Notes under the pieces: generated by a model
What the model saw: only the letters and a program-made list of their open reading frames with translations
Told to the model about the DNA's origin: nothing
Databases searched by the model: none
Translations under genes and position numbers: made by a program
NCBI RefSeq assembly: GCF_902713615.1
Contig: NC_052162.1
Coordinates: 117,667,989-117,731,988 of the forward strand
Length of the DNA stretch: 64,000 bases
Direction: 5' to 3'
DNA from: Scyliorhinus canicula
Taxonomy: Eukaryota
In this document: positions 1,608 to 62,605 of the stretch, in pieces
Layout of the letters: every line of letters starts with the position of its first letter
How positions within the stretch are numbered: the stretch's first letter is position 1

Positions 1608-2346
<739 letters not shown>

Positions 2347-3339: not shown

Positions 3340-3652
3340 GAGGCACAGTGGTTTGCACTACTGCCTCACAGCATGAGGGAACCGGATTCAATTCCAGCCT
3401 CGGCTGATTGTCTGTGTGGAGTTTGCACGTTCTCCCCGTGTCTGTGTGGGTTTCCTCCGGGTGCTCCGGTTTCCTCCCACATTCCAAAGATGTGCAGATT
3501 AGGTGGATTAGCCGTGCTAAATTGCCCCTTAGTGTCCAATAAGGTTAGCTAGGGATAGGGTGGGGGCTTGGGCCTCGGTGGGCTGCTCTTTTGGAGAGTT
3601 GGTACAGACTTGATGGGCCCAATGGCCTCTTTCTGCACTGTAGGGATTCTAT
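3340..3652 (+). mobile_element. V-SINE (HE1-like), near full length
   Basis: tRNA-like head, V-domain and CR1-derived tail (GATGGGCC..ATGGCCTC..TTCTATG). Confidence 0.85.
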
Positions 3653-3999
3653 GAAAACAGAGTTTTACAGCAGAGCCAGAGGCCCTTCGGCCCATCATTT
3701 CTGCATCAGCCATCGAGCATGTATGAATTCCAATCACTTGGACCATAGCCTTGTATGCTATGGCCTATCAAGTGCTCATCTCAATGCTTCTTCAATGTTG
3801 TGAGGTTTCCCGCCTCTGCCACGCTTTCAGGCAGCGAGTTCCAGATTCCCACCACCCACTGGTGAAAATGTTTTTCCTCAAATCCCATCTAAATCTCCTG
3901 CCCCTCACCTTAAATTTCTGCCCACTGTTTATTGACCTGTCAACTAAGGGGAAAGCTCTCTTCCTATCTACTCTAGCTGTGTCCTTCATAAATTTGTAT

Positions 4000-7243: not shown

Positions 7244-7733
7244 GGAATGGAGGGAGTGTGTGTGGGGTGGAAAATTACAGTTTTGGGAGAAACAAGAGGG
7301 AAAACAATATTCCATAAAAACAGAATTGTCTTTTCTGAATTTCTATCCTGTACTGATAATTAATTTTGGAAACTCCTTTTACAGGATGTTTAAAGAGGAG
7401 GATTTACAGACAGAAATCTCAAACCAGACATCATGTCAGCATCTGCCAAAGACATTCAGATTCACAGGGCCTGAATATCATTGGCCTTGAGTCTCGAGGG
7501 AGAAATGTTTGTTTTGACTACTTCAAAAGATTTTAATCATCAGTGTGACTGAAAGAGCACTGAGACACACAAGTGGGAGTGTTACAGTTAACTGACTGTG
7601 AAAATAACTTAACACAGCCTGAAAAAAAAATCACACCATTCATAGCAGGGAGAGACTGTGTGTGTTGTGTGTGTGTGTGAGCCAAGCCATCAACCGATTC
7701 CCAAACCTGGCGAGTCACATAAACACCAGCCAA

Positions 7734-8579
7734 ATGGAGAAGCCATGGAAATGTGGGGATTGTGGGAAGGGATACAAAGCCCCATCTGAGCTGGAAATTC
7801 ATCGACGCAGCCACACTGGGGAGAGGCCGTTCACCTGCCCTGAGTGTGGGAAGGGATTCGCTCGGTTATTTAACCTTCAGTTACATCAGCGAATTCACAC
7901 CCAGGAGAGGCCATTCACCTGCTCTGAGTGTGGGAAAGGGTTCACCAAGTCATCCAACCTGAAGTTACACCAGAGAGTTCACACTGGAGAACGGCCATAC
8001 ACCTGCTCTCGGTGTGCGAAGGGATTCATTGATTCATCCACTCTACAGAAACATCAGCGAGTTCACACCAGGGAAAAGCCGTTCTCCTGCTCTGACTGTG
8101 GGAAGGGATTCGCTCAGTCATCCCACCTGCAGACACATCAGCGAATTCACAATGGGGAGCGGCCTTTTACTTGCTCTGCGTGTGGGAAGGGATTCACTCA
8201 GTTATCCAACCTGCTGTCACACCAGCGGGTTCACAGTGGGGAGAGGCCGTTCACCTGCTCCATGTGTGGGAAAGCATTCATTGATTCATCCACTCTGCAG
8301 AGACACCAGAGAGTTCACACCGGGGAAAAGCCGTTCACCTGCTCTGACTGTGGGAAGGGATTCGCTCAGTCATACCACCTGCAGACACACCAGCGGGTTC
8401 ACACTGGGGAGCAGCCTTTTACCTGCCCCATGTGTGGGAAGGGATTCACTCAGTCGTCCCACCTGCAGACACACCAGCGGGTTCACAGTGGAGAGAGGCC
8501 GTTCACCTGCTCTGTGTGTGGGAAGGGATTTATTTGTTCATCTGAGCTGCTAAGACACCAGGGCAGTCACACTGATTAG
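7734..8579 (+). CDS. ZNF gene B, C2H2 zinc-finger protein, 10 fingers, 281 aa, no KRAB/SCAN/BTB domain
   Basis: Open frame from the [13 protein letters not shown] with TGERP linkers; acceptor ttttacag|G at 7384/7385. Confidence 0.9.
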
Positions 8580-8653: not shown

Positions 8654-9036
8654 TAGGGGTGGGCAAACTATGGCCCGCGGGCCGCATGCGGCCCGCCAAA
8701 GGTCTTTATGCGGCCCACCAAGTCATTAAAAAATTTTTTTTTTTAAAAACTTTAAAAAAAAAAAATTTTTTTTTAAAGGTTAATGGGGGGGGGGGGGGGG
8801 CTGTTGGGTTACTTACTGGTATAGGGTGGATACGTTGACTTGAGTAGGGTGATCATTGCTCGGCACAACATCGAGGGCCGAAGGGCCCGTTCTGTGCTGT
8901 ACTGTTCTATGTTCTACATGAGGCGCCCAGAATCATAACCGGGTGAAGTAATCATTTTACTTAATATACTATGCGGCCCTTTAAAATTGTGAATTTCTGA
9001 ATGTGGCCCTTGCACGGAAAAGTTTGCCCACCCCTG
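8654..9036. mobile_element. Non-autonomous hAT (Charlie-like) DNA transposon/MITE
   Basis: 16-bp TIR (T/C)AGGGGTGGGCAAACT; perfect 8-bp TSD GATTAGAT at 8646-8653 and 9037-9044; SINE/CR1 tail nested at ~8780-8917. Confidence 0.92.
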
Positions 9037-9704
9037 GATTAGATGGTTACTTGAGCCATTCTTCATTCCCGGTGGGCACTGCGGGGGTTGAGCTGCATCA
9101 TTGACTCACAAGATAACATTTTAGTTTCAAGTTTTATAACTTTACTTTGGTAATTTGTTTTTTGTTTCACTGCCTATTCAATGTTATTTGTTTTAAAGGA
9201 GCAGAAAGAGACACTGACTGACATCAGGTGGTGTCAGGTGGTCTATAAATGTAACATTTCACTCTGTGAACAAATCCACACCAAATAGAGATTGAGTCCA
9301 CCCTGAGACTGGATTTTAAAAAAAGTTTTAGCAAATCTCCCAGATGATTTCTGGAAGGAGATTTTTTCTTTTATTTTCACAAGATTCTTAATACAACTGC
9401 TAATGACGAGAGAAGAAATGAGTCATTGATTATACATAGAATAAGAGTTCAGCAAATACCCAGTCTGTGTGAATAGATGAACAAATACCCAGTCTGTTGC
9501 TGAATCCAGCAATGGGAATAGAATTAAAAATATATACTTGACTGTCGGAAGTTTGCTGACAAAGTTGGTCAATAATTATTCCTGTTGACCAGTAATATAT
9601 CAATTTCACACCTCTAGTGTAAATATCTTTTTCTCTCCAAAATACTTTTAATATTTGTTTTGAGCCTATTGGTTACTGTAGAAACCAGGATTGGCTAAAC
9701 CCAG

Positions 9705-10146
9705 CCAACTGCACCATCTAGTGGAGTAATCTCAGACTGCAGGGTGCCAACTGCACCATCTAGTGGAGTAATCTCAGACTGCAGGGTGCCAACTGCACCA
9801 TCTAGTGGAGTAATCTCAGACTGCAGGGTGCCAACTGCACCATCTAGTGGAGTAATCTCAGACTGCAGGGTGCCAACTGCACCATCTAGTGGAGTAATCT
9901 CAGACTGCAGGGTGCCAACTACACCATCTAGTGGAGTAATCTCAGACTGCAGGGTGCCAACTGCACCATCTAGTGGAGTAATCTCAGGATGCAGGGTGCC
10001 AACTGCACCATCTAGTGGAGTAATCTCAGATTGCAGGGTGCCAACTGCACCATCTAGTGGAGTAATCTCATATTGTAGGGTGCCAACTGCACCATCTAGT
10101 GGAGTAATCTCAGATTGCAGGGTGCCAACTGCACCATCTAGTGGAG
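9705..10146 (-). repeat. 42-bp minisatellite (~10.5 units), each unit with a CTCF-like site
   Basis: Unit CCAACTGCACCATCTAGTGGAGTAATCTCAGACTGCAGGGTG; minus strand reads TGCAG-N12-CCACTAGATGGTGCAG. Confidence 0.9.
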
Positions 10147-10844
10147 CCGCGCAGAATTACAGTCAAAGCCTGGTCGACAATGGTTGATAAACTCATGGTC
10201 GTCCTGTGGTATTTCCAGTCCGTGTTGTCAGAACCCCAGCTGCTCGCTGGCTGAGGTACACAGCTGTGTTCCCTCTGGACATCTGCTGAGGTAGCTCTCC
10301 AGGGTCGTACACGGTGTTGGCTCAGCCATTATACTCCCTACAGTTAGATATCTCAGTGGTCCTCAGTCCTGAAGCTCCAGCTGCGGTAAGTGTGAGCAGC
10401 TTCTGGGTTTGTGAGGTGGGGTTGGTGTGCCATGGCTGAGCTGACAGGAAGAGAAGCGGAGGTGTAGCTGTGACCCTTTGCGATGGAGTGTGTGAACCCC
10501 TCGTCCTTACCAATGTCAAACCAACACGAATTTGCTGCTTGCTATCACTGTCCTTCAGCTAACAAACCTTCAGTCAATTCCTCAGCACCTCACCCAATTG
10601 GGGTGGAACCGATTGTTCACACCGGGCAGAGACGAGGCAGGTTCTGAGGGAGGCTGGACGAGGGCAGGATCAGCAACTCACATTTTTACTCCAGGAATTG
10701 CATCCAACTAACCTACAACAAAATTCCCTCTCCAGCCTGAACACCAGGCAGCCTGGCCAGGATCGGCACATTCCCGGATAGATCCTGTGACGAGTAACCG
10801 GAGATTGTTGTCACTTGTGTTGTACATTGTTTATCAAGGAAGCA

Positions 10845-12000
10845 TTTCTTTTTTTAAAAAATCACTTTTATTTTTGTAACAAATTACACATTCAGCAACA
10901 CAACAGGGGTGAGAGTAACAGTGGGAGAGATCAGAGCCACATGATGGGAGCTGCCTCGTTCACTGATGCTGTGGCCGGGTTCCGCATCTTCACCCAGCAA
11001 TAGATCTTGAAGCACATGACCCATTCCTGGTGACACTGTTTATTCCAGTTTAATATTGACAGTGCTTAATGCTTCTACACTCCCATACATCCGCTTCATG
11101 AACTGCTAAACGAACGCTGGGAATTTCTCCTGCTGAATACTCTCATGAATAAAGCGCATCAGGTTCAGCTGGTAGGCAATGTTGTGGATGGTGATGTGAT
11201 GGAAGGCGGCAGTGTCACTCCTGAACAGAGCGTGGAGATATGCTCGAGTGTACCTCTTACAAGTCGGGCATTCACAATCCTCATCGATGGGCCCGAAATC
11301 CTTGGCATATTGCCTGTGCTTCAACTGCAAAGATCCCCAGGGAACGAGTGCAGATCCAAACTGCGCTGTGCGTGTGGGAAATACAGTCAAACATGTCACA
11401 GCCCAGAGCCACACACACCACCAGATCTGTCGCATACCCGACTCCCATTAGGTAACGTGGTTTCTCGGGTGGGAGGTACTCTGTGCTCAGCTTCACCATT
11501 CTCCAGAAATGATCCTTCTCCTCCCCTGCCACTCAATCCTCCGATGGCAAAACCAGAGACGCACATTTAATCATCTCTGTCAGACATTTCTTCCACAGTT
11601 CAGCATCCAGACCCCCCTGGATAATGGCAAATAGACTCTGCTGCCCGGGATTCATGTTTGCTGCAATGCAGCGATCCAACCAGCGAACAGACCTGAACAT
11701 GGCTTCCTCCACCCTCGGCCCAGTCACTGTACTGCTGACAACATCATCCAGCCTCATGCCCAGGTGGTAGGTGTTGCCCAGGCAGATTTGGCAGCCCAGC
11801 GCCTCCAGCTGCGGGACGGCGATTCCCTTCAGGGTTCCCTGGGTTCCCACCGGCATAAACACCGGGGTGTCCAGGGCTCCGTGCGGCAGCTGCAGGCGGC
11901 ACAGGCGGGCCCGGCTCACCGGACAGTCGGTGCGGCTCAGAGTCCGGAGCGGGCGGCGCGGGAGGAGGCCTAGTCCCGCCCACCGGCCCGTCACCAGGGC
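10845..12000 (-). pseudogene. QTRT1: Processed pseudogene of queuine tRNA-ribosyltransferase catalytic subunit 1 (eukaryotic TGT)
   Basis: Intronless motifs [61 protein letters not shown] and HNIAYQL; frameshifts near 11560, 11525 and 11380; internal stop at 11106; native stop 11040-11042; AATAAA (tttatt 10867-10872) and a short A-run. Confidence 0.95.
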
Positions 12001-12404
12001 AACGCCGGAGGCTGGATTCTTAATGGAAGTTCGAGCTCACACCAAACTGAAAGGTGAAGGAAAATACACCACCACTTATAAAGGGGGAGATCAGGAATCA
12101 AAACCTCCATTCTGTTTACAGACCAGTAGTGAGAGGAGAAATCAGGGCTGTTTAAATTAATTCCCTTCCTTTCTGACATGGAGTGGAGTGGGGTCAGGAG
12201 GTATCTACCTGTAATGTTTCACTCTGTGAATAAATCTATACCAAGTACAGATTGGTTCCAGTTTCTTCCTTCACCAAAAGACTCTCAGGATTATATTATG
12301 GTAATACACAACCCTTATCATATGGTGAAAGTTGGAAAATAACATTTCAGACAGAATCTTACAATCCCAGTAGTTTTTGTGGGAAATAACTGAAGCGAGT
12401 GGAA

Positions 12405-14741: not shown

Positions 14742-17700
14742 TGATCCAATCAGTGTGGTCGGAGAGGCTGTTCTGATCCAATCAGTGTGGTCGGAGAGGC
14801 TGTTACGATCCGATCAGTACGGTCGGAGAGACTGTTACGATCCGATCAGTACGGTCGGAGAGACTGTTGCGATCCGATCAGTATGGTCGGAGAGGCTGTT
14901 ACGATGCGATCAGTATGATCGGAGAGGCTGTTACGATCCGATCAGTACCGTCGGAGAGACTGTTACGATCCGATCAGTACGGTCGGAGAGGCTGTTACGA
15001 TGCGATCAGTGTGGTCGGAGAGGCTGTTACGATCCGATCAGTATGGTCGGAGAGGCTGTTACGATCCGATCAGTACGGTCGGAGAGGCTGTTACGATCCG
15101 ATCAGTGTGGTCAGAGAGGCTGTTACGGTCCGATCAGTATGGTCGGAGAGGCTGTTACGATGCGATCAGTATGGTCGGAGAGGCTGTTACGATCCGATCA
15201 GTATGGTCGGAGATGCTGTTACGATCCGATCAGTATGGTCGGAGAGGCTGTTACCATCCGATCAGTGTGGTCGGAGAGGCTGTTACGATCCGATCAGTAT
15301 AGTCGGAGAGGCTGTTGCGATCCGATCAGTATGGTCGGAGAGGCTGTTACGATCCGATCAGTGTGGTTGGAGAGGCTGTTACGATCCGATCAGTGTGGTC
15401 GGAGAGGCTGTTACGATCCGATCAGTATGGTCGGAGAGGCTGTTACGATCCGATCAGTATGGTCAGAGAGGTTGTTACGATCCGATCAGTGTGGTCGGAG
15501 ATGCTGTTATGATCCGATCAGTACGGTCGGAGAGGCTGTTACGATCCGATCAGTATGGTCGGAGAGGCTGTTGCGATCCGATCAGTATGGTCGGAGAGGC
15601 TGTTACGATGCGATCAGTATGGTCGGAGAGGCTGTTACGATCCGATCAGTATGGTCGGAGAGGCTGTTACGATCCGATCAGTATGGTCGGAGAGGCTGTT
15701 GCGATCCGATCAGTATGGTCGGAGAGGCTGTTACGATGCGATCAGTATGGTCGGAGAGGCTGTTACGATCCGATCAGTGTGGTCGGAGAGGCTGTTACGA
15801 TCCGATCAGTATGGTCGGAGAGGCTGTTACGATCCGATCAGTGTGGTCGGAGAGGCTGTTACGATCCAATCAGTATGGTCGGAGAGGCTGTTACGATGCG
15901 ATCAGTATGGTCGGAGAGGCTGTTACGATGCGATCAGTGAGGTCAGAGAGGCTGTTACAATCCGATCAGTATGGTCGGAGAGGCTGTTACGATCCGATCA
16001 GTACGGTCGGAGAGGCTGTTACGATCCGATCAGTACGGTCGGAGAGGCTGTTACGATGCGATCAGTGTGGTCGGAGAGGCTGTTACGATCCGATCAGTAT
16101 GATCGGAGATGCTGTTACGATCTGATCAGTACGGTCGGAGAGGCTGTTACGATCCGATCAGTATAGTCGGAGAGGCTGTTGCGATCCGATCAGTGTGGTC
16201 GGAGAGGCTGTTACGATCCGATCAGTACGGTCGGAGAGGCTGTTACGATCCGATCAGTACGGTCGGAGAGGCTGTTACGATCCGATCAGTATGGTCGGAG
16301 AGGCTGTTACGATCCGATCAGTGTGGTCGGAGAGGCTGTTACGATCCAATCAGTATAGTCGGAGAGGCTGTTACGATCCGATCAGTGTGGTTGGAGAGGC
16401 TGTTACGATCCGATCAGTATGGTCGGAGATGCTGTTACGATCCGATCAGTACGGTTGGAGAGGCTGTTACGATCCGATCAGTACGGTCGGAGAGGCTGTT
16501 ACGATCCGATCAGTGTGGTCGGAGAGGCTGTTACGATCCGATCAGTATGGTCGGAGATGCTGTTACGATCCGATCAGTATAGTCGGAGAGGCTGTTACGA
16601 TCCGATCAGTGCGGTCGGAGAGGCTGTTACGATCCGATCAGTACGGTCGGAGAGGCTGTTACGATCCGATCAGTGTGGTCGGAGAGGCTGTTACGATCCG
16701 ATCAGTGTGGTCGGAGAGGCTGTTACGATCCGATCAGTATGGTCGGAGAGGCTGTTACGATCCGATCAGTGCGGTCGGAGAGGCTGTTACGATCCGATCA
16801 GTACGGTCGGAGAGGCTGTTACGATCCGATCAGTATGGTCGGAGAGGCTGTTACGATCTGATCAGTATGGTCGGAGAGGCTGTTACGATCCGATCAGTAT
16901 GGTCGGAGAGGCTGTTACGACCCGATCAGTCCGGTCGGAGAGGTTGTTACGATGCGATCAGTGTGGTCGGAGAGGCTGTTACGATCCGATCAGTATGATC
17001 GGAGATGCTGTTACGATCTGATCAGTACGGTCGGAGAGGCTGTTACGATCCGATCAGTATAGTCGGAGAGGCTGTTACGATCCGATCAGTGTGGTCGGAG
17101 AGGCTGTTACGATCCGATCAGTACGGTCGGAGAGGCTGTTACGATCCGATCAGTACGGTCGGAGAGGCTGTTACGATCCGATCAGTGTGGTCGGAGAGGC
17201 TGTTACGATCCAATCAGTATAGTCGGAGAGGCTGTTACGATCCGATCAGTGTGGTCGGAGAGGCTGTTACGATCCGATCAGTATGGTCGGAGATGCTGTT
17301 ACGATCCGATCAGTACGGTTGGAGAGGCTGTTACGATCCGATCAGTATGGTCGGAGAGGCTGTTACGATCCGATCAGTGTGGTCGGAGAGGCTGTTACGA
17401 TCCGATCAGTATGGTCGGAGATGCTGTTACGATCCGATCAGTATAGTCGGAGAGGCTGTTACGATCCGATCAGTGCGGTCGGAGAGGCTGTTACGATCCG
17501 ATCAGTACGGTCGGAGAGGCTGTTACGATCCGATCAGTGTGGTCGGAGAGGCTGTTACGATCCGATCAGTGTGGTCGGAGAGGCTGTTACGATCCGATCA
17601 GTGCGGTCGGAGAGGCTGTTACGATCCGATCAGTACGGTCGGAGAGGCTGTTACGATCCGATCAGTGTGGTCGGAGAGGCTGTTACGATCCGATCAGTAT

Positions 17701-17812
17701 AGTCGGAGAGGCTGTTACGATCCGATCAGTATGGTCGGAGAGGCTGTTACGATCCGATCAGTATAGTCGGAGAGGCTGTTATGATCCGATCAGTATAATC
17801 GGAGAGGCTGTT
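14742..17812. repeat. 32-bp CpG-rich tandem satellite, ~96 copies
   Basis: Unit GATCCGATCAGTRYGGTCGGAGAGGCTGTTAC; no unique spacers. Confidence 0.97.
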
Positions 17813-20095: not shown

Positions 20096-20602
20096 TCACT
20101 TGTGAACTCCCTGGTGTTTCAACAGATAGGATGACCGAGTGAATCCCTTCCCACACACAGAGCAGGTGAACGGCTTCTCCCCCAAGTGAACTCGCTGGTG
20201 TCTCAGCAGCTGTGATGAAACACAGAATCTCTTCCCACACTCAGTGCAGGTGAACGGCTTCTCCCCCAAGTGAACTCGCTGGTGTGTCCGCAGGTTGGAC
20301 GAATATCCAAATTCCTTCCCACACTGAGAGCAGGTGAACGGCTTCTCCCCAGTGTGAATTAGTTGGTGTTTCCGTAGGCTGGATAATTGAGTGAATCCCT
20401 TCCCACACTGAGAGCAGGTGGATGGCTTCTCCCCGGTGTGAATTTGCTGATGTGACTTCAGGTTGGATAACTGAACGAATCCCTTCCCACACACAGAGCA
20501 GGTGAACGGCCTCTCCCCAGTGTGAATGTGTCGATGAACTTCGAGCCTTGATGGGAAACTGTATCTCTTCCCACAATCCCCACATTTCCACGGTTTCTCC
20601 AT
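20096..20602 (-). CDS. ZNF gene C, C2H2 zinc-finger protein, 6 fingers, 168 aa
   Basis: Open frame [10 protein letters not shown]...HQGVHK-stop; exon 2 at 21118-21183 with intact splice sites; acceptor at ~20960. Confidence 0.88.
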   Translation of the reverse strand: MEKPWKCGDCGKRYSFPSRLEVHRHIHTGERPFTCSVCGKGFVQLSNLKSHQQIHTGEKPSTCSQCGKGFTQLSSLRKHQLIHTGEKPFTCSQCGKEFGYSSNLRTHQRVHLGEKPFTCTECGKRFCVSSQLLRHQRVHLGEKPFTCSVCGKGFTRSSYLLKHQGVHK

Positions 20603-21402
20603 GTTTTTGGTCAACTCGTGTCTCTCCAGGTTGGACAATCAGTTGAGGCTTTGCCCACACACAGAACACGTGTACGGTCTCCCCGCTGTGAATGGTGTGA
20701 TGTTTTTTCAGGCTGTGTAACTAGTTAAAGCTCTTTCCACAGTCAGTGCTCTGGAACACTCTCACTCGGGTGTGTGTGTCTCGGTGCTTTTCCAGTCACA
20801 CTGATGGTTAAAATGTTTTGAAGCTGACAGATCCGGCAAACATTTCTCCTTCTAGATTTAAAGGCCGATGATATTCAGGTCCAAGGAATCGAGTGACTCT
20901 GACAGATCCCAGATGCGACATTTGCGATTTCGGTCTGTAATTCCTCCTCTTCTAAACTCCTGAAAAGGAATCACCACTGTCAGTACAGGATCGAAATTCA
21001 CAAACAGCCAATTCTAGTTTCTCTGGAACATTCTTTCCTCTCTCATTCCCCAAAAGCTGTAAATCTCCATCCCACACACTCTCCCTCCATTCTCACTCTG
21101 CTGTATCTAATATTCACCCTCCCAATTCTCCTGAAGGTGCTGATTCAGGCTGATTGACAGACCCATGCTCACTGCTTCCTGTCCTGGACAGGAGATCATA
21201 ACAAACAGGAGCTGTAGTCGGCCATTCAGCCCATCGAGCCTGCTCAACCATTCAATGGGATCATTGTCCGATTTACCTCAGCACCATTTTCCCACACTAT
21301 CCTCCCATATCCCTCGATATCTTCAGTATCTAGAAACCTGTCAATCTCTGTCTTGAAAATATTTGATGACCGACGCCACACAATCATCTGGGGTAGAGAA
21401 TT

Positions 21403-21712
21403 GGGGCAGCACGGTAGCACAGTGGTTAGTACTGCGGCCTCGCAATGCCAGGGTCCTGGGTTCAATTCCAGCCTTGGGTCAATGTCTGTGTGGAGTTTGT
21501 ACGTTCTCCCCGTGTCTGCGTGGGTTTCCTCCGGGTGCTCTGGGTTCTCCCAGATGTACGGGGTAAGTGGATTGGCTGTGCTAAATTGCCCCCTAGTGTC
21601 CAGGGATGTGCAGGTTAGAGTGTGGGGCTGCAGGGTTAGGGTGGGATATGGATCCGTGCAGGCTCGATGGGCCGAATAGCCTCCTTCTGCACTGCAGGGA
21701 TTCTAACATTCT
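21403..21712 (+). mobile_element. V-SINE nested in a CR1 3' fragment (21195-21830)
   Basis: tRNA head, V-domain and tail. Confidence 0.8.
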
Positions 21713-21834
21713 AAGAATTCCAAAGCAGCACCACATCTTCGAGTAAAGAAATCCCTCCCTCATCTCCATTTTCCTGCCTGTTCCCCAGAACCCTCGACTC
21801 CCTCATCAATCAGAAATCTGTCTGGGGGTCCACA

Positions 21835-29407: not shown

Positions 29408-31960
29408 TTGGCATGAGCTATAGACATCTGGAGGGGGAAATGCAGGGAGAAATACCAGGGGCCAAGTTAAAGAAAAAGAAGAATTCAAATTCTTCCTCAA
29501 AATGTGTCGGAAATGACGTAACTCTTATCAGGGAGGCATCAAATCACCACTCCTGACCTTGGGGTGAGCCCTCGAGCAGGAACTCCAGAGAAATTAGGAG
29601 ATGGTCCACAATTACGATGTTTCCTGTGGTGCAGGAGGACACCAGGTGGAGGATTGTCCTCGGCTGAAATAAAATCATTGATTCTATTATGACTTTGATG
29701 TGGGGCTGGAAAGACGGTAAAATCTACACCCTTTGGTGCAAAGCTCTCCACATAACCCAACTCCTTACAAGCCTGGGCCACCGCCCGACCTTGCAGCATG
29801 GGGGGTGGGGGTTCCTGGTAACCAGGGGCTTATCTACCAGAGAATTTAAGTGGCCGTTGAAGTCTACTAAATCCACAAAAACCTTTGTAATGAACTTCAT
29901 AGAGTATTTTGGGGATCCCTAAACATTCATTATTGAAACAACATCTCCATGTATTGAACCTCTAATGATCACGTATCTACCTCTTTTGTCCTTTGTGCTG
30001 GTTTCAACCTTAAAAGTGATATTTTTATTAATAAGGATTTCCACACCCCTGCTACTTGATGAAAAGGTGGTGAAACACCCCTCCCCCCAATCCTGACTCA
30101 ATTTAAAGTGTTCCTCATCATCCAGATGGGTTTTCTGTAATTCATAGAATTTACAGTGCAGAAGGAGGCCATTCGGCCCATCGAGTCTGCACCGGCTCTT
30201 GGAATGTGCACCCTACCCAAGGTCCACACCTCCACCCTATCCCCATAACCCAGTAACCCCACCCAACACTCAAGGGCAATTTTGGACACTAAGGGCAATT
30301 TATCATGGCCAATCCACCTAACCTGCACATCTTTGTGACGCTGGGAGGAAACCGGAGCACCCAGAGGAAACCCATGCACACACGGTGAGGATGTGCAGAC
30401 TCCACACAGACAGTGACCCAAGCCGGAATCAAACCTGGGACGCTGGAGCTGTGAAGCGATTATGCTATCCACAATGCTACCATAATGAAGCTGTGTCGAA
30501 TTACTCCTTAAGAAAGGAGAGGATCTTTTTCCTTCTGACAAGGTGATGGATGCCCCGTACATTCCCTGAGAAAATTTGCAGATTAACTACCGCCGTTAGT
30601 TAGGCGACAGAGAGAACAGGAACAGATTTTCACACCGCAATCGGGCATGCGCCATTACCCCCTCCTCCAACTCACTTTACACCAGAGGCACCAAAGTTTC
30701 CCCAAACTGCTCCTTTCACAGATAAAAGCCCCGTCTGTACCAGAGTAGGATAAAGTCAACAACACATAAACCCTCCCATAATGACAAAAATACAAAAGAA
30801 TCACCACCACAATAGATCCAAGGGAACATTCCTCAATAAGACTGAGGACCTGGAGGATTAACCCCACGGCCAGAGTGTCGTTACCCTAAGGATAACTTCT
30901 CCAAAATGAGGAGAAGAAAAGAAGGGCCAACTGGGGAATGGGGATCGAATGTCCTCCCACATTTTACACCCACCCGTGAAGACCTGCATCCACCACCACC
31001 CACCCTTCGGCAATGGCGCCACTCGGTTCTGCCATGATTAACAATCAGATAATAGAAGAAAGATGATGGATAATAAGCACACGGCACATCTACCATAACT
31101 GAGATAAGATAATATGAGTCCCTGGAACACTCAAGGAGAAGATGACATTCAATCGGCGCTCACAGAATAACAACTCCCTTCAACAGGATAAAAGATAACA
31201 AATTCAGACAACAACACCATGATAGGGAAAGAGTCCAGATTAGAGCCTGAGTTCGTCTGAGCAGCAAACCATCCCTCCAAATCCTTGCCCTTCAAGGATT
31301 TAGCGACGGCCGAGGCAGTAGTCGGATTATTGAAAGACTTGACGGAGTTGTTGGATACAATTTTCAGGGTCATAGGATAAAGCGACATAATTCACTGTAA
31401 GGGGAGGTGGGAGCCAGGTTTCACCTCACCTGACCCGTCTACAGGACCCACCTCACCTGACTCGTCCCCAGGATCTTCTGGTGATCTTTCAAGTTGTGGA
31501 AGGGAATGATTCCAGGCCTGGGATGAAAACTATCCCTCAGCCTCAAAGACAGGATCCGATGCCCTTTCTAATTTAAAACACCCAGGCTTCATATCCAGCT
31601 GGAGAAAACGTGGCAGCTGGTCCTCGAAGAACCTTACGGGAGTCTCACCCTCCACACCTCCTGGCAGGCCGACGACTCGGATGTTCTTTCTCTGATCTTC
31701 AGTTCTCCAAGTCCTCCAGGACAACCCCCCCCACTCCTCCCTCTCCTCCCCCCCCCCCCCCCCCCCCCCCCAACCCTCTCAGCTGGTTTTCCAAGGATTT
31801 AAATCTTGCCTCCCCCGAGGAGGCATCTTGCTCAATATTCAGGATTCTCTCCTCAGGATCGTTGATCCTTTCCTTGGTGTTTTACAGTTCAGCCTCATGA
31901 ACTCACAGATATTGAACCAGCTCACTCAGCCTCTGGTCAATAACATGGAGAATGTCGCTG
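28490..31960 (-). mobile_element. Degenerate L1 with nested SINEs (28850-29147, 30140-30482)
   Basis: ORF1 KNIRVVGLPGGVEG; endonuclease SRGVEILINK..GRYVIIRG; RT DQTGFI. Confidence 0.8.
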
Positions 31961-32645
31961 ACATAGATCGGCCAATGATCCCATAGAATAGACGAGCAGG
32001 CTTGATGGGCCGAATGGCTGACTGCAGCTCCTATTTTTATGATTTCCGTGTCCATGACAGGATGCAGTGAGCATGGATCTGTCAATCAGCCTGAAGCAGC
32101 ACCTTCAGGAGAATTGGGAGGGTGAATATTAGATACAGCAGAGTGAGAATGGAGGGAGAGTGTGTGGGATGGAGATTTACAGCTTTTGGGGAATGAGAGA
32201 GGAAAGAATGTTCCAGAGAATCTCAAATTGTCTGTTCTGAATTTCTATCCTGTACTGACAGTGATGTCTTTTGTAAATTGTTTTCACACAATATTAGAAG
32301 AGGAGGAATTACAGACAGAAATCTCAAACGTCTCATCTCAATCTGACTGAGTCTCTCAATTCCTTGGAACTGAATATCATCAGACTTTTATTCGAGAAGG
32401 AGAAATGTTTGTCTGTTCTGTCGGCTTCAAAAGATTTTAAACATCAGTGTGACTGAAAAAGCATCGAGAGACACACACCCGAGTGAGAGTGTTCCAGAGC
32501 ACTGACTGGGAAGAGCTTTAACCAGTTACACAGCCTGAAAAATCATCACACCATTCGCAGCGGGGAGAGACCGTACACATGTTCTGTGTGTAGACGAGGC
32601 CTCAACTGATTGTCCGACCTGGAGAGACACAAGGACACCCCCACC

Positions 32646-33321
32646 CTGGAGAAACCGTGGAAATGTGGGGACTGTGGGAAGGGATACAGGGCTCCATCTG
32701 AGCTGGAAGCTCATCGGCGCAGTCACACTGGGGAGAGGCCGTTCACCTGCACTCAGTGTGAGAAGGGATTCGCTCAGTTATCCAGCCTGCAGAATCACCA
32801 GCGAGTTCACACTGGGGAGAGGCCGTTCACCTGCTCTCAGTGTGGGAAGGGATTCACTCAGTTGTCCACCCTGCGGATACACCAACGAGTTCACACTGGG
32901 GAGAGGCCGTTCACCTGCTCTCAGTGTGGGAAGGGATTCACTCAGTTGTCCACCCTGCGGATACACCAACGAGTTCACACTGGGGAGAGGCCGTTCACCT
33001 GCTCTCATTGTGAGAAGGGATTCACTCAGTTATACAGCCTGCAGACACACCAGCGAGTTCATACTGGGGAGAGGCCGTTCACCTGCCCTCAGTGTGAGAA
33101 GGGATTCACTCAGTTATCCAGCTTGCGGTCACACCAGCGAGTTCACACTGGGGGAAAAGCCGTTTACTTGCTCTCAGTGTGAGAAGGGATTTACTTACTT
33201 ATCCAACCTGCGGAGACACCAGCTTGTTCACACTGGGGAGAGACCGTTCACCTGCTCTCAGTGTGGGAAGGGATTCTGTGTTTCCTCGTCCCTGCAAAGA
33301 CACCAACAAGTTCACAATTGA
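32646..33321 (+). pseudogene. ZNF gene D, 8 fingers, probably disabled
   Basis: Family ATG replaced by CTG (32646); +1 frameshift in GGGGGAAAAG at ~33150; both acceptors mutated (tccat|GAC at 32055, cacaca|ATAT at ~32290). Confidence 0.8.
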
Positions 33322-35809: not shown

Positions 35810-36135
35810 GCGGCACAATGGCATAGTAGTTAGCACTGTTGCCTCACAGCACTGGGGTCCCATGTTCAATTCTGGCCTTGGTCACTGTCTGTGTGGGGTT
35901 TGTACGTTCTCCCGTGTCTGTGTGGGTTTCCACTGAGTGCCTTGGTTTCCTCCCACAGTCCTAAGATGTATGGGTTAGGGGGATTGGCCCTGATAAATTG
36001 CCCCTCAGTGTCCAGGGATGTGCAGGTTAGGTTATGGGGTTACGGGTGAGTGGATATGGGTAGAGTGCTCTTTGGAAGAGTCGGTGCCGACACGATGGGC
36101 TGAATGGCCTCCTTCTGCACTCAAGGGATTCTATA
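35810..36135 (+). mobile_element. V-SINE
   Basis: tRNA head, V-domain and tail. Confidence 0.8.
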
Positions 36136-36278
36136 TCTATTTCGATAACACTTTTCATGACCACACAATCTCCTAAAGCCTTTGAAGTACTTTTGAAGTG
36201 TAGCCACTGTTGTAATGTCGGAAACTCTCGGTATGCCTCATTAATAATATTTTGTTTTAAAAATCAGTCGATCTTCGC

Positions 36279-41182: not shown

Positions 41183-41773
41183 TCACTTGTGAACTCGCTG
41201 GTGTGTCCGCAGTGTGGATGATGTTCGAAACCGCTTAGCACAGTGAGAGCAGCTGAACGGTCTCTCCTCAGTGTGAATGCGCTGGTGGATCATCAGTACG
41301 TGAGAGCTTTTGAAACCCCTCCCACAGTCAGAGCATTTAAAGGGTCTCTCATTGGTATGAGTGACATTGTGTCTGAGCAAATTGGACGACTGAGTGAATC
41401 CCTTTCCACACACAGAGCAGGTGAAAGGCCTCTCCCCGGTGTGAACTCGCTGGTGTCTCTGCAGTGCGAATAAGTGAGTGAATCCCTTCCCACACACAGA
41501 GCAGGTGAACGGCTTCTCCCCGGTGTGAATTCGCTGGTGTGCCTGCAGGGTGGATGACTGAATGAAACTCTTCCCACACACAGAGCATCTGAATGGCTTT
41601 TCACCTGTGTGAATTCGCTGATGTCTCCAGAGGCTGGATGAATCACTGAATTCTTTTCCACACTTTAAGCAGCTGAATGGCCTCGTCCCGGCATGAATGC
41701 GTCGATGCGTTTCCAGTGCAGATGGGTACCTAAATCCCTTCCCACAGTCCCCACATTTCCACCGTTTCTCCAT
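41183..41773 (-). CDS. ZNF gene E, C2H2 zinc-finger protein, 7 fingers, 196 aa
   Basis: Open frame [10 protein letters not shown]...HQRVHK-stop; exon-2 donor deleted at ~42280 and left promoter arm missing, so expression is uncertain. Confidence 0.85.
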   Translation of the reverse strand: MEKRWKCGDCGKGFRYPSALETHRRIHAGTRPFSCLKCGKEFSDSSSLWRHQRIHTGEKPFRCSVCGKSFIQSSTLQAHQRIHTGEKPFTCSVCGKGFTHLFALQRHQRVHTGERPFTCSVCGKGFTQSSNLLRHNVTHTNERPFKCSDCGRGFKSSHVLMIHQRIHTEERPFSCSHCAKRFRTSSTLRTHQRVHK

Positions 41774-42644: not shown

Positions 42645-43170
42645 CTGCTCCATGATGTCCCCCTCCCCCTTGTCCGGCACTGCGCATGTCCAAGAACGAG
42701 GGGAAAGTGCGTGTGTGCAGGGCTAGCCCACCCTCCTTGACCTGCCTGATGAGGTGTTGACCAATGGGAAATCGAGTGGGCCAGCCAATCAGAGCGTGGG
42801 ATTTGTGTGAATGGATATTGAGCTTCACACAGACTGAAACCTCCTCCAGTCTCCAACATCTGTCAGTAAAACACTTTTATAGAACAGTACAGCACAGAAC
42901 AGGCCCTTCGGCCCTCGATGTTGTGCCGAGCAATGATCACCCTACTCAAACCCACGTATCCACCCTATACCCGTAACCCAACAACCCCCCCTTAACCTTA
43001 CTTTATAGGACACTACGGGCAATTTAGCATAGCCAATCCACCTTTTCTCCCCCTTTCCATTTCTTTTCTCATTCTGACCTTCAATTGGTCACTTGCAGCA
43101 ACTGAAGGGAAAGGAAGTGAAGCCAGGGAGGGTGCAGGCTCTGGAAAGCTTGGCCCAGGTCTCTCTCTTT
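42645..43170 (+). promoter_or_regulatory. Promoter cassette P3 (half, damaged)
   Basis: TGCGCATGTCC; CCAAT 42761/42785 with the ETS site deleted; exon-1 arm interrupted by a SINE tail (42879-43042) and by an L1. Confidence 0.65.
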
Positions 43171-48190: not shown

Positions 48191-48204
48191 TAGACAGAGA
48201 GATA

Positions 48205-48690
48205 TAGAACATAGAACAGTACAGCACAGAACAGGCCCTTCAGCCCTCAATGTTGTGCCGAGCCATGATCACCCTACTCAAAACCCACGTATCCACCCTA
48301 TACCCGTAACCCAACAACCCCCCCCTTTTTTAACCTTACTTTTTTTATTAGGCCACTACGGGCAATTTAGCATGGCCAATCCACCTAACCCGCACATCTT
48401 TGGACTGTGGGAGGAAACCGGAGCACCCGGAGGAAACCCACGCACACAGGGGGAGGATGTGCAGACTCCACACAGACAGTGACCCAGCCGGTATGTGATG
48501 TTGATATATGGTACACATTCGTAGAATCCCTAAAGTGCAGAAGGGGGACATTCAGTCAATCAAGTTTGCACTGTCCCTCCCAAAGAGCACCCTACCGAGG
48601 CCCAGTCCCCCACCCACTCCCCATAACCCCATATAACCATTGGACACTAAGGGGCAATTTAGTATGGCCGATCCTGCACATCTTTGGATA
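48205..48690 (-). mobile_element. V-SINE pieces (two)
   Basis: (ATAGAAC)n tail and V-domain. Confidence 0.75.
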
Positions 48691-49497
48691 TATGAGATAT
48701 ATTATTTATGGTTATGGATAATGTACATTTATTAGTATTTCTAGTCTTATAATATAGTATTGTAACTTATTTATTTCCAGTCATAGATTCATTACAGTAC
48801 AGCTCAAATTTGTTTGTTATGTAACCCTGCAAGTGCATTTCCTTGCAGTGCACATGCAATTTTATTTTGAAATTATTGATCATCTCTAAATGTTTCTCTC
48901 ATAGGCAGCAAGTTCAAAGTCAAATAAATCGCTGCCTAAGTAGATATATTTCTCACAAATCCCTGTACCTTCAGCAACTTAAACAGGACTCAGTGGCCAT
49001 GAATCTGTCAATCAGTTTGAATCAGCACCTTCAAGAGAATTGGGAGGATGAATATTGGATACAGCAGAGTGAGAATGGAGGGATTATGTGGGACGGAGAT
49101 TTTACAGCTTTTGGGGAATGAGAGGAAAGAATGTTCCATAGAAACTTGAATTGTCTGTTGTGAATTTCTATCCTTTACTGACTGTGATGACTTTTGTAAA
49201 CTCCTTTCACAGTTTACTAGAAGTTGGATATTACGCAGACCCAATTCTCCAAACAAATGTCACATGAGTGTATGACAGAGTCACTTGATTCATCAGGCCC
49301 TGAATATCTTCAGCCTTTGAATCTAGAAGGAGAGAAGTTTGTCTGTTCTGTCTGCTGACTGTGGAAAGAGCTTTCGCCAGTTACACAAGCTGAAATATCA
49401 TCACACCATTTAGTGGGGAGAGACCATACCCATGTTTCTGTGTGGACAAGGCTTCAACTGAATGTGAAACTTGAAAAATCACAAGGATACATGCACC

Positions 49498-50172
49498 ATG
49501 GAGAAACCGTGGAAATGTGGTGATTGTGGGAAGGGATTTCGTGCTCCCTCTGATCTAGAGATTCATCGACGCAGCCACACTGGGGAGAGGCCGTTCATCT
49601 GCTCTGTGTGTGCGAAGGGGTTCAGTAAGTCATCTGTCTTGCAGACACACCAGCGAGTTCACAGCAGAGAGCGGCCATTCACCTGCCTTGACTGTGGGAA
49701 AGGATTCACTCATTCATGGAACCTGCAGACACACCAGCGAGTTCACACTGGCGAGAGGCCATTCACCTGTTCTGAGTGTGGGAAGGGCTTCAGTCGGTTG
49801 TCCAGCCTGCAGGTACACCGGCGAGTTCACTCCGGGGAGAGGCTGTTCTCCTGTTCTGCATGTGGGAAGGGATTCACTGATCCATCCAACCTGTGGAAGC
49901 ACCAGCGAGTTCACACAGGGGAGAAGCCTTTCACCTGCTCCAAGTGTGGGAAGGGATTCTGTGATTCATCACATCTGCTGGCACACCAGCGAGTTCACAC
50001 TGGCGAGAGGCCATTCATTTGCTCTCAGTGTGGGAAGGGATTCACTCAGTTCTCAAACCTACTGACACATCGGCGACTTCACACCGGGGAGAGGCCATTC
50101 ACCTGCCTGGAGTGCGGGAAGGGATTCACTCAGTTAATATGCCTGCAGAAACACCAACGAGTTCACAAGTGA
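49498..50172 (+). CDS. ZNF gene F, C2H2 zinc-finger protein, 8 fingers, 224 aa
   Basis: ACCATGG Kozak context; open frame [10 protein letters not shown]...HQRVHK-stop; acceptor tttcacag at ~49212. Confidence 0.9.
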
Positions 50173-52994: not shown

Positions 52995-55900
52995 GGGGAC
53001 TTCCGGTGGCGGCGATGTCCGAGTGAGCCGCACATTCAGCGGGCTCTCACTCCGGTGGGCGTTTAGGGGCTGATTCCCCGCGATAGCGGGACAACGGAGC
53101 TGAAGGAAGGCGGCAGTGAAAGTGCGGAGGAGCGGGCTGCGGCACATGGAACAGCGGGAGTCCACGAGGCAGAAGAAGAGAGAGAAAAAGGGACAGAGAC
53201 AAGGAGCTGAAGAAACTTACCTGGAACCTAAGATGGCGGACACACGGACCCCGGACTCAGCAATACAGCAGGCGCTGGATAACATGCTCCAGGTAATGAA
53301 ATCCAGTTTTGAAGCGTTGAAGCGGGACAGCTTGGGCCCAATCCAGAAGGCAGTGGATCAGCTGAACCAGAGGCTGGATGCGCAAGATGTTAAAAGTTAA
53401 GGAGCTGGGAGAGGCGGTGGAGGAGCAGGCGGATGCGCAGACTGTTGCGGCGCTAGAAGTTGATGGGCTGAAGGAGCGGCAGAGAAGACTGCTTGACAGA
53501 GTGGAGGAGCTGGAGAATAGAGTCCGCAGGAACAACCTGAGGATGGTCGGCCTCCCGAAGGGGGCTGAGGGAGCTGATGCCACAGCATTTGTAGCAGACC
53601 TATTGATGCAGCTGATGGGGGCCGAAGCCTTTCCGCGACCGCCGGAGCTGGAGGGGGCATACAGAGTGCAGGCGAGGCAGGGGCGGCCGGGTGGACCCCC
53701 CCCCCCCCCCGGATGGTGATTAGGTTCCACAGGTTCGTGGACAAGGAGCGGGTGCTGCGTGGGCAAAGAGCGGCAGGAGCAGCGCGTGGAACAACAGTGT
53801 CCTCCGCATTTACCAGGAACTAAGCCAGGAGGTGGCTCGGCAGCGAGCAGCCTTTAAGAATGTCAAGGAGGTGCTGTTCAAGAAGCACGTGAAGTTTGGT
53901 CTGCTGTTCCCAGCTCGTTTATGGGTCACGCACCAGGGTCAACACCACTACTTCTCCGAGCCTGAAGAAGCGATGGACTTTGCGAGGGATCAGGGGCTGG
54001 TCCCGAAAAGAGGCCCCACGGACGCGAATTAGGGCCCGAGGATTACCGTGGGATGGTACGCCGAATGGGCCTGGACTGCTGTTCAATGGTTTGCTGGGTC
54101 AAAGGTGCCAAGCGGAACATCTGGGACTCTTTCCTTTGTTCATGGACATTGGTTTGGGGGGTTTTTTGTTTTTTGTTCTCTTATGTTTTTGTTTTTTCCT
54201 CTTTTTCTGTTTTTTCCTTTTTGGGCAGATTTTTACTTTTTGTGCGGCTTGTGGAGGACACTGGAGCCGGCACGGTAACGTCAGCAAGGGGGGCCAAGGA
54301 CGTGGGTTGGGGGTTTTTTGATTTGTTGATGACCATGCCTTCCTGTGCCAGTGCATTTGCTCCAGTGGGTTGGAGAGGGGGATGGGGAAGCCGGGGAGGG
54401 GGAGGACGGGGAAACAATGGGAATGAGACAGGAGGGCGCCGGAGTGTTGAGTCGCTGGGTTAGCAGATTGGCTAGTCAAGGGAGTCAGGTGGGGGGGGAG
54501 ATAACAGCCAGTGGATGGCAGGTGTGGGGGCTATCGGGAGATGTTGTTGGGGGGGGGGGGGGGGGGTTCTGCTGACATGGGAGGGACTTGAAATAGGCAC
54601 TGGAAAGGAGGTTGAGGGTGGAGGCAGCCAACGGGCGGGCCAGGAATGGCGCGATGCACGGGCCGGGGGCCGGCCCGAGAAAGGCTATGGCTGACCGGCG
54701 GGGTGGGGGGGGTGGGGGGTGTTGTGCCCCCGACCAGGCTGATCACCTGGAACATCAGGGGACTGAATGGGCCGGTTAAGAGGGCACAGGTGTTCGCGCA
54801 CTTGCGGGCTCTGAAGGCGGACGTAATTATGTTGCAGGAGATATATCTGAAAGTGTCTGACCAGACCAGGCTAAGGAAGGGTCGGATTAGCCAGGTCTTC
54901 CACTCGGACTTGGACTCAAAGTCCAGGGGGTGGCAATCATGATCGACAAGCGGGTGCAATTTGAGGCGGAGGGCATAGCCGCAGACAGGGGGGGCAGATA
55001 CCTGATGGTACGGGGCAGACTGGAGGGGAGAAGAGTGGTGCTGGTGAATATATATGCCCCGAACTGGGATGACGTGGACTTCATTAAAAGAGTTCTGGGG
55101 AAGATCCCGGACCTGGACTCCCGCAGGCTAATATTGGCGGGGGGGGGGGGGGACTTTAACATGGTTTTTGACCCGGCTTTGGATCGGTCGTGTCCCAGAA
55201 CGGGTAGACTCCCAGCAATGGCAAGGGAGCTGAAAGGGTTCATGGAGCAAATGGGGGCAGTGGACCCCTGGAGAGCCAGACAGCCGACAGGAAGGGGCTA
55301 CTCGTTTTATTCGCACGTCCATAAAGTATATTCTAGGATAGATTTCTTTGTACTAAGCAGGGATTGTATAGGGGAGGTAAAGAACACAGAATATTCGGCA
55401 ATTACTATCTCAGACCATGCCCCGCACTGGGTAGACCTGCAGATCGGGGGAGCGAGCTACCAACGCCCGCAATGGAGGCTAGACGTGGGACTGCTGTCGG
55501 AGGAGGGGATCTGTGAGAGGCTTCGGAGATGTATGCAAAATTACCTGCAGGTGAATGACACGGGGGAGGTCTCAGCGGCGACCCTGTGGGAGGCGCTAAA
55601 GGCAATAGTGAGGGGGGAGCTGATTTCAATTGGGGCCCACAGAGCCAAGGCAGACCGGGCAGAGATGGATAGATTGGTCAGAGAAATGGGTCGGATAGAT
55701 GAAGAGCACGCGGAGTCCCCGGGGGAGGTTTTACTCAGGGAGAGGCAGAGACTACAGGCGGAACTGGGGGCACTATCCACGAGTAGGGCCGTGCAACAGC
55801 TTAGGAAGGCAAGGGGAGTGGTGTACGAGCATGGGGAAAAGGCTAGCAGACTGTTAGCGCAGCAACTCAGGAGGAGGGAGGCGGCCAGGGAAATAGGTAG

Positions 55901-58480: not shown

Positions 58481-58735
<255 letters not shown>

Positions 58736-60870: not shown

Positions 60871-62605
<1,735 letters not shown>

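Follow-up and report, generated by a model that had tools for sequence, protein, structure and literature searches.

Does a short minisatellite within a zinc-finger gene cluster of the catshark multiply a genuine CTCF site, and could the resulting array act as an insulator? The first-pass annotation of this locus had described a single high-affinity CTCF site, amplified in tandem into a directional, copy-number-tunable loop anchor. Our analysis of the window (the whole 64,000-nucleotide stretch of DNA that surrounds the array) points to a more restrained reading, for which we see about an even chance: the array is a young, locally amplified intergenic minisatellite, and its unit contains a single bipartite CTCF-type motif that is predicted to be of moderate strength. 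By its sequence, the array is a candidate multi-site CTCF platform.

Structure and surroundings of the array

Tandem Repeats Finder (TRF) places 10.5 copies of a 42-bp unit at 9704-10146 (score 830); matches amount to 97% and indels to 0%. The units are head-to-tail and fall within the 10-100-bp range of a minisatellite or VNTR. On the minus strand, the 16-mer CCACTAGATGGTGCAG occurs 11 times, from 9709 and 9751 to 10129, with a strict 42-bp period. Ten of these copies are exact, and the copy at 9919 has one substitution. The chance expectation for this 16-mer is 0.09 matches, and 11 matches were reached in no shuffle; elsewhere in the window there is no further copy, with up to two mismatches allowed. 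All 11 cores point the same way. TRF and the 16-mer search therefore agree on what had been described, i.e. 11 co-oriented minus-strand cores with a 42-bp period from 9709 to 10129, one of them substituted. The description of the unit as CpG-free is equally sound, with a CpG count of 0 in 9601-10000. Hence, the array unit has no methylation switch.

The five leftmost units (9704-9913) are mutually identical, and the variants lie toward the right. The sixth unit is the one with the core substitution, and units seven to ten vary solely where the minus strand reads as the upstream module. Neither flank, 9300-9703 or 10147-12187, has a second copy within the window. Since the units are 97% identical, five of them are indistinguishable and the flanks are unique in the window, we infer that the array is young and of local origin. 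A comparison with shuffles revealed no clear case of decayed extra units in the flanks. The best candidate on the left, CACC-TCTAGTG at ~9609-9620, has a score that was reached by 7 of 300 shuffles; the best score on the right was reached by 269 of 300, and we conclude that there is nothing there. A 30-mer of the array unit had no match in metagenome contigs, and the three ORFs that flank the array returned no record on look-up. A 26-nt direct repeat that ends in CAAATACCCAGTCTGT occurs twice, 29 bp apart, at 9443-9497, some 200 bp left of the array.

The window covers a cluster of vertebrate C2H2 zinc-finger genes, with 84-bp finger periods identified by TRF at 1613, 7812, 20141, 32723, 41389, 49576 and 58487. 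The zinc-finger genes are:

1613-2267, minus strand, zinc-finger gene
7734-8579, plus strand, zinc-finger gene
20096-20669, minus strand, zinc-finger gene
32610-33321, plus strand, zinc-finger gene
41183-41773, minus strand, zinc-finger gene
49471-50172, plus strand, zinc-finger gene
58487-58658, minus strand, zinc-finger gene

These genes switch strand alternately across the window, forming divergent pairs and 3'-to-3' spacers of varying content. The ORF at 7662-8579 has ten zinc fingers (Pfam). The 281-residue product of 7734-8576 has an exact record on assembly GCA_902713615.2 only, and a zinc-finger protein query for the same locus in other species returned distant paralogues only. The intergenic array is located in the 3'-to-3' spacer that separates the convergent genes at 7734-8579 (+) and 20096-20669 (-), ~1.1 kb beyond the stop codon of the gene that ends at 8579. 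Downstream of that gene there is an ATTAAA at 8725, followed by an A/T tract. The array had been placed between gene modules. It does occupy a 3'-to-3' spacer between gene pairs, but the flanks are unduplicated and the equivalent spacers (33.3-41.2 kb and 50.2-58.5 kb) contain no array, only weak single motifs. Since the spacers of the other gene pairs lack an array, it is not a built-in feature of the zinc-finger cluster.

The spacer and the rest of the window contain several other repeats and remnants. Just beyond the zinc-finger stop codon is an inverted-repeat element (8655-9035) with perfect 15-nt repeats, AGGGGTGGGCAAACT and its complement, that looks like a MITE. The interior of this element (8793-8920) recurs at 42879-42991, 48202-48325 and 61796-61856 with 88-91% identity. 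To the right of the array, at a distance of 4.6 kb, is a 32-bp minisatellite of ~96 copies (14743-17812, 93% matches) with a strong G-over-C skew and no CTCF-like motif. A LINE remnant at 54930-57059 (+) has one ORF with an RVT_1 reverse-transcriptase domain (E 8e-34), and the preceding ORF weakly matches the endonuclease/exonuclease/phosphatase family, below threshold (E 1.7e-4, 21.9 bits vs a cut-off of 24.5). A search of the whole window against Rfam, at the gathering threshold, gave no match.

To the right, 0.7 kb from the array, is a processed pseudogene of QTRT1, the catalytic subunit of queuine tRNA-ribosyltransferase, which runs on the minus strand from ~12040 to 10849. The retrocopy is intronless and its downstream part is frameshifted. 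In one ORF, the counterparts of human residues ~23-83 and ~155-221 are joined, and the internal block ~84-150 is missing. The retrocopy terminates at a T7 tract at 10849, adjoining TTTATT at 10867. The possibility that the array is part of the retrocopy was rejected because the pseudogene stops at this tract, 0.7 kb off. A CpG-island promoter beside the array was also rejected: the ratio of observed to expected CpG is 0-0.5 over 1.6 kb on each side, and the sole GC-rich block (11801-12000, GC 0.74) is the 5' end of the retrocopy, which resembles a CpG island.

The CTCF-like core and the upstream module

How closely do the units resemble a CTCF site? We scanned for cores with the JASPAR MA0139.1 count matrix, which was entered by hand and has the expected column sums and consensus. 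The features of the array are:

9704..10146, CTCF-like motifs on the minus strand, 42-bp minisatellite of 10 full units and a 23-bp partial unit (TRF)
9709..9727, minus strand, representative core ACTCCACTAGATGGTGCAG, 19-nt PWM span, 12.97 bits, p 1.0e-5
9751, 9793, 9835, 9877, 9961, 10003, 10045 and 10087 (start positions), minus strand, same 19-mer core (PWM scan)
9919..9937, minus strand, variant core, weakened (GGTGCAG to GGTGTAG), 9.18 bits, p 6.4e-5, one mismatch to the 16-mer
10129-10147, minus strand, last core, opens with GCT rather than ACT, 12.87 bits
9733..9741, minus strand, upstream module TGCAGTCTG of the first unit, -17 to -9 from CCAC, followed by the 5-bp spacer AGATT (9728-9732)
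10153..10161, minus strand, unique-flank 9-mer TGTAATTCT, preceding the last core by the same offset, spacer GCGCG (10148-10152)

The core agrees with the consensus CCASYAGRKGGCRS at 13 of 14 positions, and every copy has T for C at position 12. With this hand-entered matrix, the typical array core reaches 12.97 bits (exact p 1.0e-5), where the maximum is 26.5 bits. A core with C at the mismatched position (PWM position 15) would reach 16.5 bits (p 1.3e-6), such that the mismatch costs 3.5 bits. T is the second commonest base at this position, accounting for 67/909 in the matrix used. Single sites that score at least as well as the array core occur three times in the same 64 kb, at 344 (+), 21584 (-) and 63326 (-). 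By consensus and by JASPAR matrix, the array core is of CTCF type, and the match is moderate, below the top range. The core also exceeds the cut-off applied to skate, where TAD boundaries have oriented CTCF motifs identified with the same matrix at a score of at least 8 (PMC10115646).

These scores bear on three claims. The core had been equated with the CTCF consensus; each copy is indeed CTCF-type, but none is perfect against CCASYAGRKGGCRS. A JASPAR scan, proposed in the first-pass annotation as a check, returns p 1.0e-5 and a score above the skate cut-off, but in the middle of the range. The claim of high affinity found no support: the core has 12.97 of 26.5 bits, three single sites in the window are equal or better, and the upstream 9-mer matches at only 6/8 positions. 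The array core is respectable but mid-range, and the term "high-affinity" is unsupported by score.

The second part of a CTCF site is the upstream module, which we defined as a 9-mer like TGCAGTNCC located 5-6 bp ahead of the core. The upstream consensus has been reported to resemble CAGCTGTTCC, to be present in 13-15% of sites, and to be tied to insulator and enhancer-blocking activity (PMC12885311). A crystal structure of ZF3-11 bound to DNA shows ZF9 reading positions -9 to -12 and ZF11 in contact with G at -15/-16 (PMC10484683). A large affinity screen found that a 9-mer with a 5-bp spacer is optimal (bioRxiv 10.64898/2026.01.05.696797). In the array, the T of the upstream pentamer precedes CCAC by exactly 17 nt (counted to its first C), and TGTAAT in the unique flank shares this offset. 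The array spacing agrees with both the crystal-structure numbering and the measured optimum (PMC10484683; bioRxiv 10.64898/2026.01.05.696797).

The upstream 9-mer is TGCAGTCTG in six units and TGCAATCTG in two (those with cores at 10003 and 10087); it is altered to TGCATCCTG with the core at 9961 and to TACAATATG with the core at 10045. Compared with TGCAGTNCC, six units match at 6/8 positions and the remaining units at 5/8 or 4/8. The TGCAGT of the repeat-unit 9-mer fits, but T and G replace both Cs, and the 8th-position C is missing from all units. The part of the module that is read by ZF9 (the CC bases) is thereby missing from the array units. Mutation of the 8th-position C reduced affinity by 67% on average (bioRxiv 10.64898/2026.01.05.696797). 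The flank 9-mer TGTAATTCT matches at 5/8 positions, among them the 8th-position C, which is absent from the repeat units. In this window, the background probability of a match of at least 6/8 at either allowed spacing is 0.010, and the three other strong cores have upstream matches of at most 3/8 each. Within the array unit, the upstream module varies most: four of the ten units have an altered module vs one altered core, a difference that is not significant and that involves changes that are not independent.

The 17-bp offset that had been claimed for the upstream motif, including the TGTAAT in the flank, proved exact when the units were compared. TGCAG or TGCAA had been reported in each unit. 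This is correct for eight units (six TGCAG and two TGCAA) but not for the unit at 9956 (TGCAT) or the unit at 10040 (TACAA); the flank has TGTAA. For the upstream motif as a whole, the spacing is exact, but the units match at 6/8 at best and lack the 8th-position C.

Origin of the array and alternative explanations

Is the bipartite layout a coincidence? A joint match of core and upstream module at the exact optimal spacing has a probability of ~1e-7 per position, and pure chance is an unlikely explanation for such a layout at this one place. For the whole genome, we made a rough estimate from 84 phases x 1e-5 x 0.01 per array and ~8 short non-coding arrays per 64 kb. The rough chance per tandem 42-mer is ~8e-4 for the core alone and ~8e-6 for the core and upstream module together. 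Scaled to 1351 windows of this genome, the core-only figure corresponds to about five arrays at p <= 1e-5 by chance. On this rough estimate, chance alone would also yield a few bipartite-looking arrays in a genome of several gigabases. Given this expectation, we estimate, again roughly, that the seed is only one and a half to two times as likely to be a genuine CTCF-type site as not.

We propose that the seed sequence was probably a CTCF-competent site that was then copied 10 times through slippage or unequal exchange. The units share a T (GGTGC for GGCGC) that would arise in a perfect-consensus site if a methylated CpG were deaminated. Since the T-for-C mismatch is common to all copies, it presumably predates the amplification. 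CTCF likely occupies the array at some units, with chances that we put at roughly even. The two-part CTCF motif is conserved from lamprey to human (PMC5504073); catshark CTCF has 11 fingers and the YDF cohesin-binding motif, and CTCFL is also present (PMC7471279); and the CTCF orientation code is seen in skate TADs (PMC10115646). If the array is bound, the minus-strand motif would direct the CTCF N-terminus toward lower coordinates. Cohesin that approaches from the side of the zinc-finger gene at 7.7-8.6 kb would be stalled, and the array would act as a right-hand anchor that pairs with plus-strand sites further left. ZF3-11 cover 35 bp of DNA (PMC10484683). With ZF1-2 adding ~6 bp, all 11 fingers would cover ~41 bp, such that one 42-bp unit would correspond to about one full footprint. 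Neighboring units could then be filled only head-to-tail. Because the unit is about as long as a CTCF footprint and requires such packing, occupancy is probably partial.

Could the motif have arrived with a mobile element? The window contains an abundant SINE with the head TAGAATCCCTACAGTGCAGAAGGAGGCC, the tail end GTGCAAACTCCACACAGAC and an internal CTCF-like core, TGGACACTA[A/G]GGGGCAATT. The copies include the following, and about 20 more:

3370-3685, minus strand, SINE copy
21445-21737, minus strand, SINE copy
30113-30450, plus strand, SINE copy
35848-36169, minus strand, SINE copy

The G form of the SINE core, at 21584-21602 (-), is the best CTCF match in the window (16.2 bits), and the SINE-borne core may be the shark counterpart of SINE-carried CTCF sites. 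The presence of this core favors a reading in which the array is an internal tandem repeat of a transposable element or dispersed family, and the CTCF-like motif is element-borne, as in mouse SINE B2. We nonetheless regard this reading as highly improbable. By eye, the unit and both flanks have a likeness to the SINE, but a SINE origin of the array was rejected by profile HMM and alignment. The profile HMM (seven SINE copies, nhmmer) gave ~25 hits in the window and zero in 9300-10700 or in the array-collapsed locus, even at E <= 10. Smith-Waterman alignment of the array locus to the SINE consensus scored no better than shuffles. Among the repeats of the window, none is homologous to the unit or to the flanking DNA, which occurs only once in the window, and no terminal inverted repeats were found around the array.

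A more serious alternative to amplification of a CTCF-type site is that the resemblance is coincidental and the array is an inert VNTR, an ordinary minisatellite without CTCF binding in vivo. The core mismatch is at a strongly preferred position, with a loss of 3.5 bits, the upstream module is half-matched and variable, and the window has other, motif-free minisatellites, such as the 32-bp x 96 array at 14743-17812. Moreover, PWM score is a poor predictor of measured CTCF affinity, with a Spearman correlation of just 0.33 (bioRxiv 10.64898/2026.01.05.696797). Against this, a core and upstream module at the exact optimal spacing are expected at only ~1e-7 per position, T ranks second at the mismatched position in bound sites (67/909), AT-rich flanks of the core favor CTCF binding (bioRxiv 10.64898/2026.01.05.696797), and eleven adjacent copies increase avidity. 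We consider an inert VNTR to be somewhat unlikely. A coding repeat (42 bp is 14 codons), or a binding array for NFI, MYB or a zinc-finger protein of the cluster, is extremely unlikely. Two frames are open through the array, and the ORF at 9744-10187 (+) consists of PTAPSSGVISDCRV repeated, but this ORF begins with GTG, is in intergenic DNA, belongs to no Pfam family and has no homologue among 5.8 billion proteins; a coding repeat was rejected on the latter two grounds. The TTGGC half-site (NFI-like) and CAACTG (MYB-like) that can be read off the unit are 5-6-mers of a kind expected by chance in any 42-mer.

Has the array been selected as a directional, copy-number-tunable insulator or loop anchor that separates neighboring zinc-finger modules? 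The co-oriented, CpG-free, bipartite-type motifs are consistent with this idea, as is the location of the array in the 3'-to-3' spacer between the convergent genes at 7734-8579 (+) and 20096-20669 (-). In mammals, tandem co-oriented CTCF sites function as insulators (PMC7087399), and the upstream motif is tied to enhancer blocking (PMC12885311). However, the other gene-pair spacers (33.3-41.2 kb and 50.2-58.5 kb) are arrayless and have weak single motifs, the array flanks belong to no duplicated module, and the motif is moderate rather than strong. Variation gathers in the upstream module, the part on which insulation would depend most, and the array is too young, at 97% identity, for selection to be read. 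Selection as a tunable insulator is thus possible, unsupported, and in our judgment improbable. There is no sign that the array, rather than a single site, is selected or "tuned". A broader proposition strikes us as very unlikely, namely that catshark genomes hold a class of minisatellites with packed one-way CTCF sites (~42-bp footprint each) that form strong, copy-number-variable cohesin barriers, and that the present array isolates zinc-finger gene pairs.

Comparison with known tandem CTCF sites

What would follow from CTCF binding at this array? If bound, the array would be a natural test object, with eleven near-identical, abutting CTCF sites in the same direction, each of about one footprint. 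It would let one ask how many CTCF molecules fit onto the DNA, how the barrier strengthens as sites are added, and whether a loop anchor can vary in strength as a VNTR in a wild vertebrate. If unbound, it serves as a caution that any short motif will look impressive once a minisatellite has amplified it.

As a candidate CTCF platform, the array belongs to a kind already known, from DXPas34, DXZ4 and FIRRE, from tandem CTCF insulators, and from the conjecture about the HRNR VNTR. DXPas34, a minisatellite with 30-34-bp units at the 5' end of mouse Tsix, resembles the shark array, with its CTCF-like motif in each unit, in having short units; each DXPas34 monomer has a CTCF-binding site, and the number of sites differs among rodent species (PMC3149622). 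In contrast to the shark array, which is a CpG-free candidate, DXPas34 is CpG-rich and methylation-regulated, lies in the mammalian X-inactivation centre, and has been shown to bind CTCF. If the shark array is bound, CTCF-site minisatellites, known from the mammalian X-inactivation centre, would extend to cartilaginous fish.

The DXZ4/Dxz4 and FIRRE macrosatellites have tandem co-oriented CTCF sites, the orientation of which governs long-range contacts (PMC3491370; bioRxiv 10.1101/165340). Their units range in length from hundreds of bases to kilobases, and the macrosatellites are X-linked with allele-specific binding on the inactive X, whereas the shark unit is 42 bp, about one CTCF footprint. 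In the CTCF clusters of TAD boundaries, Pcdh and Igh, same-direction sites jointly act as leaky cohesin barriers and insulators (PMC7087399). Those sites are independent sequences located hundreds of bases to kilobases apart; the shark copies abut and are near-identical. For the human HRNR coding VNTR, CTCF sites have been predicted and the same "tunable" idea has been put forward. The HRNR repeat is an exon, and the evidence there is expression association and in-silico folding, not binding. Finally, transposon-borne CTCF sites, e.g. those of mouse SINE B2, are another case in which a repeat mechanism multiplies motifs (PMC5504073; PMC10982698). SINE B2-type motifs are spread by retrotransposition, whereas the shark motifs have been spread by local tandem duplication, without homology to the CTCF-like SINE of the same window.
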